A stretch of DNA of 64,000 nucleotides from Octopus sinensis (Eukaryota). The stretch covers positions 28,024,001 to 28,088,000 of the forward strand of contig NC_043010.1 of assembly GCF_006345805.1 (NCBI RefSeq), read 5' to 3'. Positions 9,910-23,489 of this stretch are shown piece after piece. Below the pieces are notes generated by a model. The model was given only the letters and a program-made list of their open reading frames with translations. It had not been told where the DNA came from and did no database searches. Numbering within the stretch: the stretch's first letter is position 1; each line of letters opens with the position of its first letter. A program made the translations under genes and the position numbers.

Positions 9910-10022
9910 TTGTTGCATACACGTCCTGCTTGTAGCGTAAGAATCAGACAGGACAAATATAATGGCAGCAGCTTCATCTGCCTTTTCTTGGAACTTGCGG
10001 AGATCTTCGATCGGAGTGGAAC
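9910..10022 (-). CDS. TIR gene exon 12 (G-STPIEDLRKFQEKADEAAAIIFVLSDSYATSRTCMQQ), TIR2 betaC/alphaC
   Basis: ttcattctttgtag| acceptor, caa|gtaagc donor, 113 nt, phase 1/0; AIIFVLS..Y..S.TC fits the TIR pattern. Confidence 0.9.
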
Positions 10023-10626
10023 CTACAAAGAATGAAAGAATTAAAGGAGAAAAGAATTTCAGTACGAAACGGGGAAAAGAATGAAAGAAAAATTAAGCAA
10101 CTTATTCAATACTTTAGCCTAACATCTACAAGATCGATTTTTTGGTAAATGGTCAGATATGTTCAGTTGGGAATACAAGTATATAACTGGTACTTATTTT
10201 ATTGCTTCTTTGGGAGAGGAAGAATGTCAAAGACAACTACAGCAGGATCTGAACTGAATACCAAGACAAATGAAGCTAAATAATATTTAGTGCTTCTCTG
10301 GTACCAACCTACTGAAGCTATCTCAGATTCTATGACAAAATTTTCTTGTTTTAAAGTGGTCTAAATTAAACACTTCCACCAAAAATTTCATGTTACTTTA
10401 TGACATTATTTTAGTAACTTGTATATTATTTTGAAAATTAACCAAAACTAAGGCAGTGTGTTTCAACACAGATATGGTAACAAAAGGGTTAAAGTGATCT
10501 AAATTGAAACCTTCCAACAAAAGTCCAAGATAATTTGTTCCAAGCACCAGCTTAATAATGACAAAATTAGAAAAACTGTATTTCTAAATCTCTCAGAGAG
10601 ATTTATACAGTAGCAGCCTAATAAAG

Positions 10627-10900
10627 TGATGGTTTGTTGCTGACTTAATGTGGCAGTCCCAGGAAAGGGAAGAATGCTACTGTTATTTAGCCCCAGGAAA
10701 CATTGTTTCCAGTTGGCCACGTGGCACAAGCATTCTGTGTCCTTAAGTTTTCACAGTGCTTATCTCATTTGTTTGAAAACTTAAGGACACAGAATGCTTG
10801 TGTCACATAGCCAACTGGAAATGATGTTTCCTGGAGCTAAATAGCAGGAGCATTCTTCCCTTTCCTGGGACTGCCACATTAAGTCAGCAACAAACCATCA
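10627..10900. mobile_element. Palindromic MITE-like element (about 125-bp arms)
   Basis: Left arm tgatggtttgttgctgacttaatgtggcagtcccaggaaaggg is mirrored at the right end; related to 40290-40617. Confidence 0.8.
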
Positions 10901-11224
10901 ATGACAAAATTATTTGAAAAATTAGTTGAAACAAAAGTAGTATAAAATAACGTGTCTTGAATGGCACAACAATGCAGACTGGACCATAATAACTGTTAGA
11001 ATTTAATTATTCATAGTCTGATAAAATATTTCGGAATATAAAAATTCCTTCTTCGGATATTGCTAGGAATTGATCAAGTCACTGCTATAAAAGTAGCATA
11101 TTTCAAAACAGACATGATAACAAAAGGGTTTAAATACTGAAAGCGCTTATTCCAGCAATTTAAAAGATGAAAATAATTGGAAAAGCTCACCCTGAAGAAA
11201 TTTAACCATTAAATATACATTTAC

Positions 11225-11315
11225 CGTTTTGTTGGCAGCATCTACTGGAGTCAAGTTCAGTGCTAAGCCATACTTCTAAACCTTCTTTCTCCAGCCAATT
11301 CTGCAGAGTGCGACC
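11225..11315 (-). CDS. TIR gene exon 11 (GRTLQNWLEKEGLEVWLSTELDSSRCCQQN), TIR2 alphaA/betaB
   Basis: ttttttatag| acceptor, g|gtaaaa donor, 91 nt, phase 0/1. Confidence 0.88.
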
Positions 11316-12944
11316 CTATAAAAAATAAATTTATATCAATTGAAAATCAATACATATCATCATCATCATCACCATCATTTTAACATCCACTTTTCTATGC
11401 TTGCATGGGTTGGACAAAGTTTATTGAGGCAGTTTCTCTGTCTGGATATCATTATTATTTGTTATCAGCCCTCACCTGTTTCCAAGCAAAGTAACACTTG
11501 CCCACAATACGACATGTTTCCATGGAAGACTAGAAACGAAGGATACCTCTTGTATAACAATGATGGTCATTAACAACCATCACATGAGGTCAAGACAAGG
11601 ACCCCCCCCCCACACACACACACACACATATACATACATACATACAAGCACAACATGCTTCTTTCAGTTTCTGTCTACCAAATACACTCACAAGCTTTGG
11701 CTGGCCTGGTGCTATACTAGAAAAACTTGCCCAAGGTTCCACACTGGGACTCAACTTGAAACCACATGTTTAAGAAGCAAACCTCTTAGCCATACACAGA
11801 ACACACTTCTACACTCTTTCTCTCTCTTAAGACCCATTCACAAGACATAGGTTAATCTCAATTTTAATGATTACATGGATCATCATCATTTAATGTCTGT
11901 CTTCCATGATGGCATAGTCTGTATGACTGAACAGGATCCAAGTCAGATATCAACAACTGGATGCCCTTCCTAACACCAACTTCTCAAAGTATACTGGATG
12001 TCTCTTTTTTTGCGATACAGGCCCCAGTGAGTTTGCCAAATAACTCGCAAGAAAAACAAGATGCCGCTTCAACAGAGTGGGGTTGTAGAAGGGTTGTAGA
12101 TGGGGAGGTGGCTTTATTCCAGGTGTTGAGAGACTAAAGTATCATCAATCGTTTAACGTCCGCTTTCCATGCTGGCATGGGTTGGACAGTTTGACCAGGG
12201 CTGGTAAGCAGGAAGGCTGCACCAGACTCGTCTGATTTGGCATGGTTTTCTACAGCTGGATGCCCTTCCTAAAGCCAACCACTCCAAGAGTGTAATGAGT
12301 GCTTTTATGTGCCACTGGCACAGGTGCCATTTGCATGACACCAGTACCTGCCACGACTACCATTTTATTTGGCTTGATGGGTCTTCTTCTCACACACAGC
12401 ATATTGCCAAAGGTCCCGGTTATCTGTCATCGCCTCCGTGAGGCCCAACACTCGAAAGGTGCTTTTTACGTGACATCAGACAACCAAAATTATTTCTTCT
12501 TTAAGTTTGAAAGCCGAGTCAATGGAGAGGAGTAACAACTAGATGAAATCTCCAAGCAATTTAAATGCACAAGGGCACCCAGGAGTCATGACCTTGATGC
12601 AGCTTGGAGTATAAGAAGTTAAGGGTCAAAACACCTGCCTGAATGGGGTTTCTTGTCTGAAAAACTTCTGCCATTCGGCTCTCTTGAGAGTTTCCCACCA
12701 ATGATAGAGGGACAGGCACAGCTGTCTTACAACAGAGGAACTACAAAGTTACTCAGCATTATATAAGAGTGGGTGGGAGTAAGAGGAAAGAAGACAAAGA
12801 CGGTGGTGGCAAATTCTCAAACTCAGGTACAATGTACCTGACAGCATTCTCATCCTACAAGCCCTGGTTGATGTTCATCTTGAACACCTATTGTCATAAC
12901 TTCATAAATATACAGAGGCTGAAATGATAAACTGAGCAACTTAC

Positions 12945-20821: not shown

Positions 20822-22057
20822 CTGGCAGAGTTGAGGGTAAAGCAAGAGGTGAAACACAAAATGACAATCAACAGAATAATAAAATACAAATGTTTGGAAA
20901 TTTTGGTACAGTTCTTTACCTGGAACCATTAGTTATTATCTAATCTTCTTTGATTTTTGTCAATGCAAATCACAGCTACGAAGTTGTGCAGTGACAGAAT
21001 CGGTAGAGCATCAGACAAAACGCCTTGTGGTATTTAGTGTAGACCTTTATGTCCAAAGTTCAAATCTCAACAAAGTCAATTTTTCTTTTTGCCCTTCCAG
21101 GGCTGATAAAATAACAATAGTTCAAGCCTGTTGTGCCATCAGGATACCAGAAAAGCCCTGGCAACTATCTTGCCAAGTGCCATGTAATTGTCATGGAATT
21201 TTCATACGAACACAAGGAGGGTTTTTCTCTAGTTTTTTCTTCTACAGTGCCAACAAGATGGCACTGGGGAAGAAAGTCTGTCCCAATTACCCAGACAATC
21301 TGAATGTGATGAGTTGGAACATATACTACAAAGAATTTGGTCCAAGATTTAACAATTCCTTCAATCCACCAGTCTTATGAGTAGATTTGGGAGAAGGAAA
21401 CTGAAAGAAGCCTGCCGTGCATGTATATATGTGGATATGTATATATGTGGATTTAGAAATGAATTACAATCACTAACAACACTATGACTGAAATAGGCTT
21501 CACGTGATTCTTGGAAGTGTAGTCTATTCCTAGCTACAATAACGACAACATGAATTTCTTCCATCTTCGTGTTCTGTTAAAGTATTTGAGTAAAATCATA
21601 TTAATGTGTCCGACTGGTTAAAATTCTATTTATTTATGCAGCTGAAGATGGCACTGCATTTACATTGATGTAATGATTGCATTGTTCAATTAAATGGAGC
21701 CGCTTGAAATGGTCATACTGCATCACTACTTGATATCCTGTTGCTTATTTTGATTTTATGTATATATGTGGATATGTATAGATATGAGCATTTCTCTCAC
21801 TCTCTCTCACTATTTTCCTGTATTTGGCAAGGTATTCACAGCTGGATGTTCTTCCAAACACCAACCACTTTACAGTGTGGACTGGGTGCTTTTAAGTGGT
21901 ACTTGCACTTAAGTGGTCACCAAGTACTTGCAAGACAAAAAAAAAATACTTTCAAGAGGGGAGGGGACACTGGAGGAGGTGGTCTTGTGTTGGATGATGA
22001 AAGGTTGTAGTGAGACAAAAACAGGTGTTTTGCTGTAGAGGAAGTACACAGTTACCC

Positions 22058-22114
<57 letters not shown>

Positions 22115-22419
22115 TCAGGAATGAAGACAGAAGCAGGTGTGCTACCGCAAAGGAAATACATGGTTATCCAACCCGAGGGAAATGCAGGAGAAGGAGTGAG
22201 GCTAGAGATGGTGGCAAAATGCCAGGCATACTCACAAGGGACAGAGATCAGAATATAAAAGGAATGGTTGAGTAAAGGAAGAGAGAGATATAGATGGTGG
22301 CAAGTGGTTCAAACGCCATGATGTGAGTGGCAGGATATTGTGAAGGAAGTGTGATTAAAGAGTGTAGAGGGAGGTGGTGAGTGGCAAAAACCTGTGTATA
22401 TATATAGATTGGAGTGAGG

Positions 22420-22770
22420 GGCTACTGGATAGCAATGATACAGAGGAACAGGGCCATGAGGACAGGATTAGGGAGTGAGAGCTAGGCATAGTGTATGAAG
22501 GAGGAAATGTGAGGAAGAGAAGAGATGTAGATTGGTTTGTTGGAGTAGGGTGAGTGAAAAGTTTTCTTGTTAGGAATGGGTAGAACACACAGGTTGGGGA
22601 CTAGTGGATAGCAATGATACAGTGGCACAAGGCCAAGAGGACAAGATTGGGGAGAAGGAGGTGAGCATAGGGCATAAAGTGGAAATGTGAGGAAGAAAAG
22701 ATGTAGAGACATAGTTTGGTTTGTTGTGGTGTAGAGTGTGAGAAGTTTTCTTGTTAAGTGTGGATGGGAC
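22420..22770. repeat. Tandem duplication of an approximately 178-bp unit
   Basis: ctactggatagcaatgatacag...gttttcttgtta appears twice (about 22422 and 22600). Confidence 0.75.
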
Positions 22771-23320
22771 ACAGGGCATTTAGAGCTCAGTTTCGCTGAT
22801 GTGGGCAGGTCTTATCATTGCTATTATGCAAAAGTGCCGTAAGTCCAAAATGTTGCTTTTTCCATAGCAAAACCGGTGCACAACACTTTGGCAATTTTTG
22901 ATATCTTGGCATCTGAAGCAGCTGGAGATATGATAGTTTGACCAAAAGAACTGACTATTACAAGCAAAAATAAGTATTAAAAAAAAAAGTATTTGGCCAT
23001 ATATGGACATACAATGACATAGCAACGATGTGTGTATGTGCATGCAGTTGTAAACGAGTGTCAACATCACGCAAGTGATGCAGTTCATTACCATTCTGTG
23101 ATGAACGAAGAACACATTGGCTGGGCAAAGGGGAAATGGATGAGGATTAATGAAAGGAATTGGATCCAACTGTAGAAAATCATTCTCAAATCTGATTCAC
23201 GGAAGCATGGAGCAAGTGGACATTAGAATGATGATGATGCTAGAATGGAAAGAAGGGAATGGATGCAACAGAAGGGAGGAATTTTCCAAAAATATGGGAT
23301 TTTAGAAAATAAATTCTTAC

Positions 23321-23489
23321 CAAAAATACGCTAATGTTGAGTGCAGTGAGTTCTTGTTTGAGGCTGATAGCAACTTGGGCAGCCTCAGCACGGACATAAC
23401 TGATAAGAATTTGCTTGGCATTTCCAGTTGTGACTGTATTCATAGACTTGGCAGAAATCTCTTCGCAATTGTTATCAGCAGATTTGGAA
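23321..23489 (-). CDS. TIR gene exon 6 (H-SKSADNNCEEISAKSMNTVTTGNAKQILISYVRAEAAQVAISLKQELTALNISVFL), TIR1 start
   Basis: ttctgtttttag| acceptor, ttg|gtaaga donor, 169 nt, phase 2/0; ILISY...A..L...L....SVFL is TIR betaA-alphaA-betaB. Confidence 0.95.

Follow-up and report, generated by a model that had tools for sequence, protein, structure and literature searches.

Whether an animal TIR enzyme can be paired, within a single chain, with a dead copy of the same domain, and what such a partner would do, is the question raised by a 64,000-nucleotide stretch of the Octopus sinensis genome (NCBI RefSeq assembly GCF_006345805.1, contig NC_043010.1, positions 28,024,001 to 28,088,000 of the forward strand; this whole stretch is hereafter called the window). 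A preliminary description of this DNA had proposed that it encodes a catalytic TIR domain, TIR1, with a W-x-x-x-E motif, in one chain with a second domain, TIR2, that has Gln in place of the catalytic Glu. Work on bacterial and plant TIRs has shown that these domains produce nucleotide signals and depend on ordered TIR-TIR assembly for doing so, and the control of animal TIR enzymes besides SARM1 is the question that this locus and its relatives address. Our analyses identified the gene as LOC115219292, whose product belongs to a family with the architecture UBL-UBL-TIR1-TIR2-SLOG (UBL, ubiquitin-like domain), and they established that the pairing of a live with a dead TIR is real and conserved across phyla.

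Both motifs singled out at the start, TRWSNRE for TIR1 (20716-20696) and SRTCMQQ for TIR2 (9930-9910), are indeed encoded, on the minus strand of the window. The window is eukaryotic in character, with short open reading frames (ORFs) only, microsatellites, repeats resembling short interspersed nuclear elements (SINEs) and a GC content of ~0.37. We built the gene model from the clean AG/GT borders around the motifs and then from a tblastn comparison of the closest orthologue (P0001) with the window, in which the exons followed one another colinearly between 36.4 kb and 1.0 kb. The splice junctions were each set by eye, and the exon with the start codon (63734-63713) was located afterwards. The resulting 15 minus-strand exons (63734 down to 1040) all have canonical AG/GT borders, and their stop-free splice yields 605 residues 100% identical to residues 1-605 of the O. 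sinensis protein XP_036364649.1 (LOC115219292), which places both TIRs in one polypeptide, as had been surmised. The protein is annotated as 'uncharacterized protein', and O. vulgaris is annotated with the same protein. Its full length is 840 residues, the final 235 of which (606-840, P0293) are encoded past the left end of the window; the window holds the first 15 coding exons, and the gene occupies nearly all of it. The span first delimited for the feature, 9910-23489, coincides exactly with the 3' end of the exon for the QQ residues of TIR2 and the 5' end of the first TIR1 exon, but the gene is much larger. Likewise, the two TIRs had been recognized correctly, whereas the two N-terminal ubiquitin-like domains and the C-terminal SLOG-like domain had been overlooked.

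We collected the family by searching exhaustively with HMMER, using the spliced TIR1 sequence (125 residues) as the query; this returned proteins of ~650-1000 residues that are 60-75% identical over TIR1. A word-index protein search with the TIR1 exons alone (84 residues) gave no match, but a 597-residue query did succeed. Members were found in demosponges, homoscleromorph sponges and Trichoplax as well as in molluscs, annelids, nemerteans, priapulids, chelicerates, tardigrades, echinoderms and hemichordates, an old family that ranges from sponges and placozoans to echinoderms. In all these groups the proteins are named just 'uncharacterized' or 'TIR domain-containing', and the family usually appears to be single-copy. 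The O. bimaculoides orthologue differs from the octopus protein described here at 3 of 597 residues, and the DNA of the two loci is 86-96% identical. Pfam scans of the full-length octopus protein and its orthologues show two TIR_2 stretches, separated by a linker of ~35 residues, and many orthologues add a C-terminal SLOG domain. The conservation counts given below refer to 131 non-redundant orthologues, filtered at <80% identity.

TIR1 has the marks of an intact catalytic domain. The spliced sequence matches Pfam TIR_2 (PF13676) with 53 bits (cut-off 28, E 6e-14) over profile positions 1-109 of 122, and the ThsB model of PADLOC matches it with an E value of 3e-11. By sequence, its closest solved relatives are the SARM1 TIRs, with WSNRE opposite the WVHKE of SARM1. 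The family TIR1 profile aligned to the SARM1 TIR with a probability of 97.8%, placing E300 opposite E642; the SY.R motif in strand A and the Asp that follows strand B were paired as well. Of the 131 orthologues, 130 retain W296 and 130 retain E300, the domain has an invariant Asp, D305, in addition to the catalytic Glu, and TIR1 overall is the best-conserved portion of the whole protein. The presence of W-x-x-x-E in TIR1 and the alignment of its Glu with SARM1 E642 were thus as first described. As for activity, a recent survey (Hurieva et al. 2026, preprint, bioRxiv 10.64898/2026.04.20.719644) expressed in E. coli a 165-residue construct of the starfish Patiria miniata protein A0A914B4U3 (TIR 254-417, catalytic residue 327), which its Table S4 (entry 129) lists as active and as producing cyclic ADP-ribose (cADPR). 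According to the same study, none of the active TIRs still produced cADPR once its glutamate had been changed by a point mutation. The starfish construct is contained exactly in family member P0209 and is identical to octopus TIR1 at 74 of 110 positions (67%). On the basis of sequence, profile and this assayed orthologue, octopus TIR1, whose active site is intact, is most likely an NAD+-processing TIR of the SARM1/ThsB type and most likely makes cADPR; the idea of an active NADase or cyclase is in this way supported by proxy.

TIR2 is a genuine TIR fold. With its four main exons joined, it scores 26.6 bits against Pfam TIR_2, just below the cut-off of 28 (E 9e-6), and all 26 orthologous TIR2 segments match TIR_2 at E <= 0.01, the best at 2e-12. 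The AlphaFold model (predicted local distance difference test score, pLDDT, 87.4; predicted template modelling score, pTM, 0.83) has the canonical strand-helix order from A to E, in keeping with the flavodoxin-like TIR fold of five strands and five helices. Foldseek searches with this model returned, with a probability of 1.00 and template modelling (TM) scores of ~0.55-0.68, the TIR-APAZ protein of SPARTA, MyD88, SARM1, TLR15, TLR1, TIR-STING and RPS4/RRS1; further matches were TRAM and the nucleoside 2'-deoxyribosyltransferases, which have a related fold. Smith-Waterman comparison of the window with the TIR1 exon peptides did not recover the TIR2 exons, because the paralogues are too diverged. 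At the profile level, TIR1 and TIR2 aligned over 106 columns with an E value of 4e-5, and Q501 came opposite E300 and T497 opposite W296. Motifs, gene model and alignments together go far beyond chance expectation. The TIR2 profile also pairs its own SktcqqQ segment with SCWCQYE of TLR15 and SKECDFQ of MyD88. Direct hhalign comparison of the TIR2 profile with a single SARM1 TIR reached a probability of 13% and ended before helix C, so the equivalence of Q501 with the catalytic Glu rests on the alignments of TIR2 with TIR1 and with TLR15 and MyD88; these alignments bear out the Gln that had been placed at the catalytic position.

The substitution goes further than the E-to-Q change noticed at the outset, which holds. 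The Trp of the motif, the Tyr and Arg of the strand-A loop and the Asp after strand B, all of them common to TIR1 and SARM1, are also lost from TIR2, and it had escaped attention that demosponge members have Glu at the catalytic position. Among the 131 orthologues, residue 501 is Gln in 114, while Glu and His account for 4 each, a conservation that, with the 130 of 131 for the TIR1 Glu, answers the question first raised of whether both residues are kept across orthologues. Glu-to-Gln variants of two known enzymes, SARM1 E642Q and BdTIR E127Q, are listed as inactive controls (Hurieva et al. 2026). The best-conserved part of TIR2 comprises S495, C498, Q500, Q501, Y504, E506, R508 and K509; Y504, E506 and R508 are near-invariant. 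Because the active site has changed at several positions, among them W to T and E to Q, while the helix-C face is the best-conserved part, TIR2 is most likely a catalytically dead domain maintained under selection.

The exons of the gene, all on the minus strand, are as follows, with the evidence for each in brackets.

63713-63734, minus strand: exon 1, with the ATG; encodes MSAGISK plus one base, donor GTGCGC (joins exon 2 to give W8; identical to the start of XP_036364649.1).
36194-36386, minus strand: exon 2, first ubiquitin-like domain (UBL1), residues 8-72 (tblastn, splicing; AlphaFold and Foldseek).
30416-30504, minus strand: exon 3, UBL1 with the GWPV...QE motif, residues 72-102 (tblastn, splicing).
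29260-29366, minus strand: exon 4, beginning of the second ubiquitin-like domain (UBL2), residues 102-137 (tblastn, splicing).
27809-28002, minus strand: exon 5, UBL2 with the NGWPV...QE motif and the basic linker SRKRK, residues 138-202 (splicing).
23321-23489, minus strand: exon 6, strand A, helix A and strand B of TIR1 (KQILISYVRAE...SVFL), residues 202-258 (Pfam, SARM1 alignment).
20696-20821, minus strand: exon 7, TIR1 from the BB loop to helix C; its last codon is that of the catalytic E300 (20698-20696), followed by a phase-0 intron (motif, SARM1 alignment).
17698-17824, minus strand: exon 8, TIR1 from helix C to strand E (VKLADILGK...TTQYI), residues 301-343 (Pfam, splicing).
15680-15831, minus strand: exon 9, probably the last TIR1 helix (conserved VA..I), leading into the linker between the two TIRs, residues 343-393 (the active starfish construct covers the same region).
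12945-13064, minus strand: exon 10, linker and strand A of TIR2 (KLIVITLHQEQSEF), residues 394-433 (tblastn, AlphaFold).
11225-11315, minus strand: exon 11, helix A and strand B of TIR2 (GRTLQNWLEKEGLEVWLS...), residues 434-464 (tblastn, AlphaFold).
9910-10022, minus strand: exon 12, helix B, strand C and helix C of TIR2; its last codon is that of Q501 (9912-9910), followed by a phase-0 intron (motif, profile alignments).
6729-6830, minus strand: exon 13, TIR2 from helix C to helix D, with the near-invariant YCExRK and P.W (AFYCENRKWMLALKY...), residues 502-535 (tblastn, conservation).
4608-4727, minus strand: exon 14, last strand and helix of TIR2 and linker, residues 536-575 (tblastn, AlphaFold).
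1040-1131, minus strand: exon 15, beginning of the SLOG-like domain (CIYILGKT), residues 576-606 (tblastn, RefSeq protein).

In both TIRs, a phase-0 intron comes straight after the codon for the catalytic position (20696/20695 for E300, 9910/9909 for Q501). This shared intron fits an old internal duplication; the remaining intron positions of TIR1 and TIR2 do not coincide. Two candidate coding segments were rejected. The ORF at 13896-14159 on the minus strand, considered as a linker exon, is absent from the RefSeq protein and looks like the tail of a retroelement, and a presumed third TIR near 4400-5064 amounted to chance matches, the true exon there being 4727-4608.

The gene spans >62.7 kb within the window, of which intron 1 (36387-63712) takes up ~27.3 kb. 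The whole O. bimaculoides gene measures 41.3 kb, and intron size is thus very unequal between these close species. Several repeated elements lie in the introns. Between exons 14 and 15, on the opposite strand, we identified a reverse-transcriptase fragment of a retroelement (2758-3815, plus strand), whose ORF at 2901-3812 matches Pfam RVT_1 (E 4e-9), in a region with a GC content of 0.48 and a strongly negative GC skew. Tandem arrays were found at 15234-15644 (20-bp unit, ~20.6 copies, beginning 36 bp downstream of exon 9), 17289-17657 (two copies of a 181-bp unit, beginning 41 bp downstream of exon 8) and 22418-22756 (two copies of a 179-bp unit). A SINE-like dispersed repeat of ~180-200 bp is present in many intronic copies in both orientations (7350-7533, 8412-8599, 23952-24145, 24856-25042, 34075-34287 and others), each of which matches 5-10 sites in the 61-kb O. 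bimaculoides locus.

We then turned to the two ends of the protein. For the first 180 residues, Pfam gave nothing significant, with a weak match to Ubiq_DUF_assoc only. An AlphaFold model built from a 25-sequence alignment has a pLDDT of 95.1 and shows two beta-grasp units in tandem, and Foldseek ranked linear di-ubiquitin, ISG15 and the UBLs of USP7 as its top matches (E 3e-6 to 1e-4). At the other end, the SLOG domain was identified through the orthologues: most of them match LDcluster4 (PF18306), P0006 with 32.6 bits (cut-off 26.3), matches to STALD (PF18185) are weak, PF18306 is precomputed for many orthologues, and the C-terminus of the Patiria miniata orthologue matches the ThsA STALD model of PADLOC (E 9e-4). 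SLOG, STALD and LDcluster4 were reportedly defined by Burroughs and colleagues in 2015. The octopus C-terminal domain (residues 606-840) has no Pfam match, and its Gly-rich loops read SSGCYGASQ for the family TGGFYGVGE (TGGxxGxGE) and EGSSD for EGGPG.

Taken together, our favoured reading is that of a cytosolic 840-residue protein with two ubiquitin-like domains, a live TIR1, a dead TIR2 and a SLOG-like domain, to which as a whole we give a probability of roughly 60%. In this protein, TIR2 would most likely act as a non-catalytic partner controlling or templating the TIR-TIR contacts required for TIR1 activity, or alternatively it might hold NAD+ or the product without turnover. The role of switch or scaffold first suggested for TIR2 is plausible. 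The SLOG end would be a sensor of the nucleotide signal and the UBL pair a protein-interaction module, and the whole might work like the sensor-fused TIR effectors TIR-STING and TIR-SAVED or like a single-chain Thoeris system.

Several observations weigh against this reading. The activity of TIR1 is deduced from a preprint datum for the isolated TIR1 of an orthologue, over-expressed in E. coli. That the starfish domain is active in isolation indicates that TIR2 is not strictly needed for catalysis, which weakens any version in which TIR2 is an obligatory partner. The loop at the BB-loop position of TIR2 (W449-F473, encoded by exons 11 and 12) is short in octopus, with 25 residues. In the family as a whole, its composition is acidic and rich in Ser and Gln, and its length varies between 0 and 228 residues, with a median of 43 and the longest examples in chelicerates; this variability argues against a conserved BB-loop contact. 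An 'LPxSQ'-like motif in this loop, present in only 6 of 180 orthologues, was dropped. In addition, several conserved SLOG glycines are lost in octopus and other cephalopods, where there is also no Pfam match, and the sensor idea may therefore fail in cephalopods; nucleotide binding by their SLOG-like domain may be lost or altered. Lastly, Glu is present in TIR2 of the demosponge Amphimedon queenslandica (P0050, P0051 and P0052), of P0034 and of land snails (P0228 and P0234), with a full W-x-x-x-E (W-C-E-Q-E) in P0050. Loss of catalysis is thus not universal, and the sponge sequences suggest that TIR2 was formerly catalytic, or may still be so in that group.

Other roles for TIR2 can be envisaged, among which we rank a MyD88-like adaptor first, a ligand-binding allosteric function second and residual catalysis last. 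In the first case, TIR2 would be an adaptor of the MyD88/TIRAP type that recruits other TIR proteins, leaving the chemistry of TIR1 unaffected and its activity a separate output, as the activity of starfish TIR1 without TIR2 would allow. The best solved sequence relatives of the TIR2 profile are the TIRs of TLR15 and MyD88, the latter with Gln at the same position, TIRAP is also given with Gln at the catalytic position (Tables S2 and S3 of Hurieva et al. 2026), and MyD88 filament structures are among the top Foldseek matches. The similarity to MyD88 and TLR TIR sequences is weak, however (E 0.003 to 0.15), and the family is present in placozoans, which are devoid of canonical TLRs (PMC6321704). 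We consider such an adaptor unlikely, although it is the strongest of the three.

Alternatively, TIR2 might be a ligand-binding pseudo-enzyme that binds NAD+, ADP-ribose or a cADPR isomer without cleaving it; by itself or together with the SLOG domain, it would then be an allosteric sensor and not a structural partner. The conservation of TIR2 indeed peaks around helix C, at what was once the active site (S495, C498, Q500, Q501, Y504, E506 and R508), and the specific retention of Gln, as opposed to drift to any residue, fits the preservation of ligand contacts. Nevertheless, with the Trp, the strand-A-loop Tyr and Arg and the post-strand-B Asp gone, the NAD+ pocket must be heavily remodelled, and this possibility appears still less probable than the adaptor. 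Finally, that TIR2 is still an enzyme, using another acidic residue such as E506 or acting on another substrate or by another chemistry, is very improbable: E506 is retained in 123 of 131 orthologues, the nucleoside 2'-deoxyribosyltransferases of the same fold are among the Foldseek matches and some sponge orthologues have the full motif, but E506 lies five residues past Q501, just after the C-terminus of helix C in the AlphaFold model, TIR1 has the invariant D305 at the equivalent position beside E300, so that this residue looks structural and a displaced catalytic Glu was judged unlikely, and both the E-to-Q controls and the Glu mutants cited above speak against it.

The gene and its family are already in the databases and one TIR1 has already been assayed, but the conserved pair of a live and a dead TIR, accompanied by UBLs and SLOG, has not been described as such; our literature searches found no paper discussing a two-TIR arrangement of this architecture. 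A conserved natural E-to-Q TIR beside an active TIR and a SLOG domain provides a testable model for the gating of a TIR cyclase in animals and for the place where its product might be sensed. TIR2 would also be a good case in nature of a TIR pseudo-enzyme, for which the Glu-bearing demosponge orthologues offer an evolutionary control. SLOG domains of this kind read cADPR isomers in Thoeris. By extension, the family might represent an ancient single-chain Thoeris-like module in animals outside vertebrates and insects, in which a ThsB/SARM1-like TIR cyclase, a templating or allosteric pseudo-TIR and a ThsA-like SLOG domain reading a cADPR-type signal would be joined to a di-ubiquitin-like head coupling them to other pathways. 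We advance this larger proposal tentatively and regard it as doubtful; if true, it would be the first case in animals in which a TIR that makes a signal and the domain that receives it share a protein, with a pseudo-TIR as the gate.

Among the systems already known, the nearest is the Patiria miniata protein itself (A0A914B4U3, LOC119739902), which belongs to the same family, with a TIR-TIR-SLOG arrangement (P0209: Pfam TIR_2 and LDcluster4) and a WTNRE-type motif in TIR1; the SLOG-like end of the octopus protein is more degenerate, and the assay covered the isolated starfish TIR1 alone. The text of Hurieva et al. (2026) is silent on the second TIR, the ubiquitin-like domains and the function of SLOG, which appears in a figure legend; their survey lists second TIRs of such architecture with a residue other than Glu, e.g. 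Macrostomum A0A267GNU3_2, with His and a SLOG domain.

The bacterial type I Thoeris system (ThsB, a TIR protein, with ThsA, a SIR2-SLOG protein) couples signal production by a TIR to nucleotide sensing by a SLOG domain, as the octopus family would, and TIR1 is ThsB-like. In contrast, the octopus family unites its parts in a single chain, to which a dead TIR and two UBLs are added, and it is eukaryotic and intron-rich. Pfam scans of the octopus protein and its orthologues revealed no SIR2, transmembrane or other effector domain, and the starfish TIR1 is listed for cADPR and not for 3'cADPR (Hurieva et al. 2026), so this is not a Thoeris system.

SARM1 (human and fly) and its worm counterpart TIR-1 align with octopus TIR1 at the catalytic Glu and at the Trp four positions before it, as well as at the SY.R of strand A and the Asp that follows strand B. 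The octopus protein differs in its pairs of TIRs and UBLs and its SLOG-like domain, with the TIR central and not C-terminal, and no Pfam match for ARM or SAM domains was found in its full-length sequence; it is therefore not a member of the SARM1 family. In SARM1, autoinhibition and the octameric scaffold are supplied by ARM and SAM, not by a second TIR.

The TIRs of the adaptors MyD88 and TIRAP are non-catalytic and, like TIR2, carry Gln where the catalytic Glu would be; MyD88 is among the top structural matches of TIR2. Unlike MyD88, the octopus protein is devoid of a death domain, the sequence similarity is marginal, and TIR2 adjoins an active TIR in the same chain. In the plant RPS4/RRS1 pair, a competent TIR is paired with a partner TIR without the catalytic Glu, which restrains or controls the competent one; those TIRs are on separate nucleotide-binding leucine-rich repeat polypeptides, whereas those of octopus are in tandem in one chain. 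The nearest functional analogies to the octopus protein are this plant pair and the sensor-fused TIR effectors TIR-STING and TIR-SAVED.

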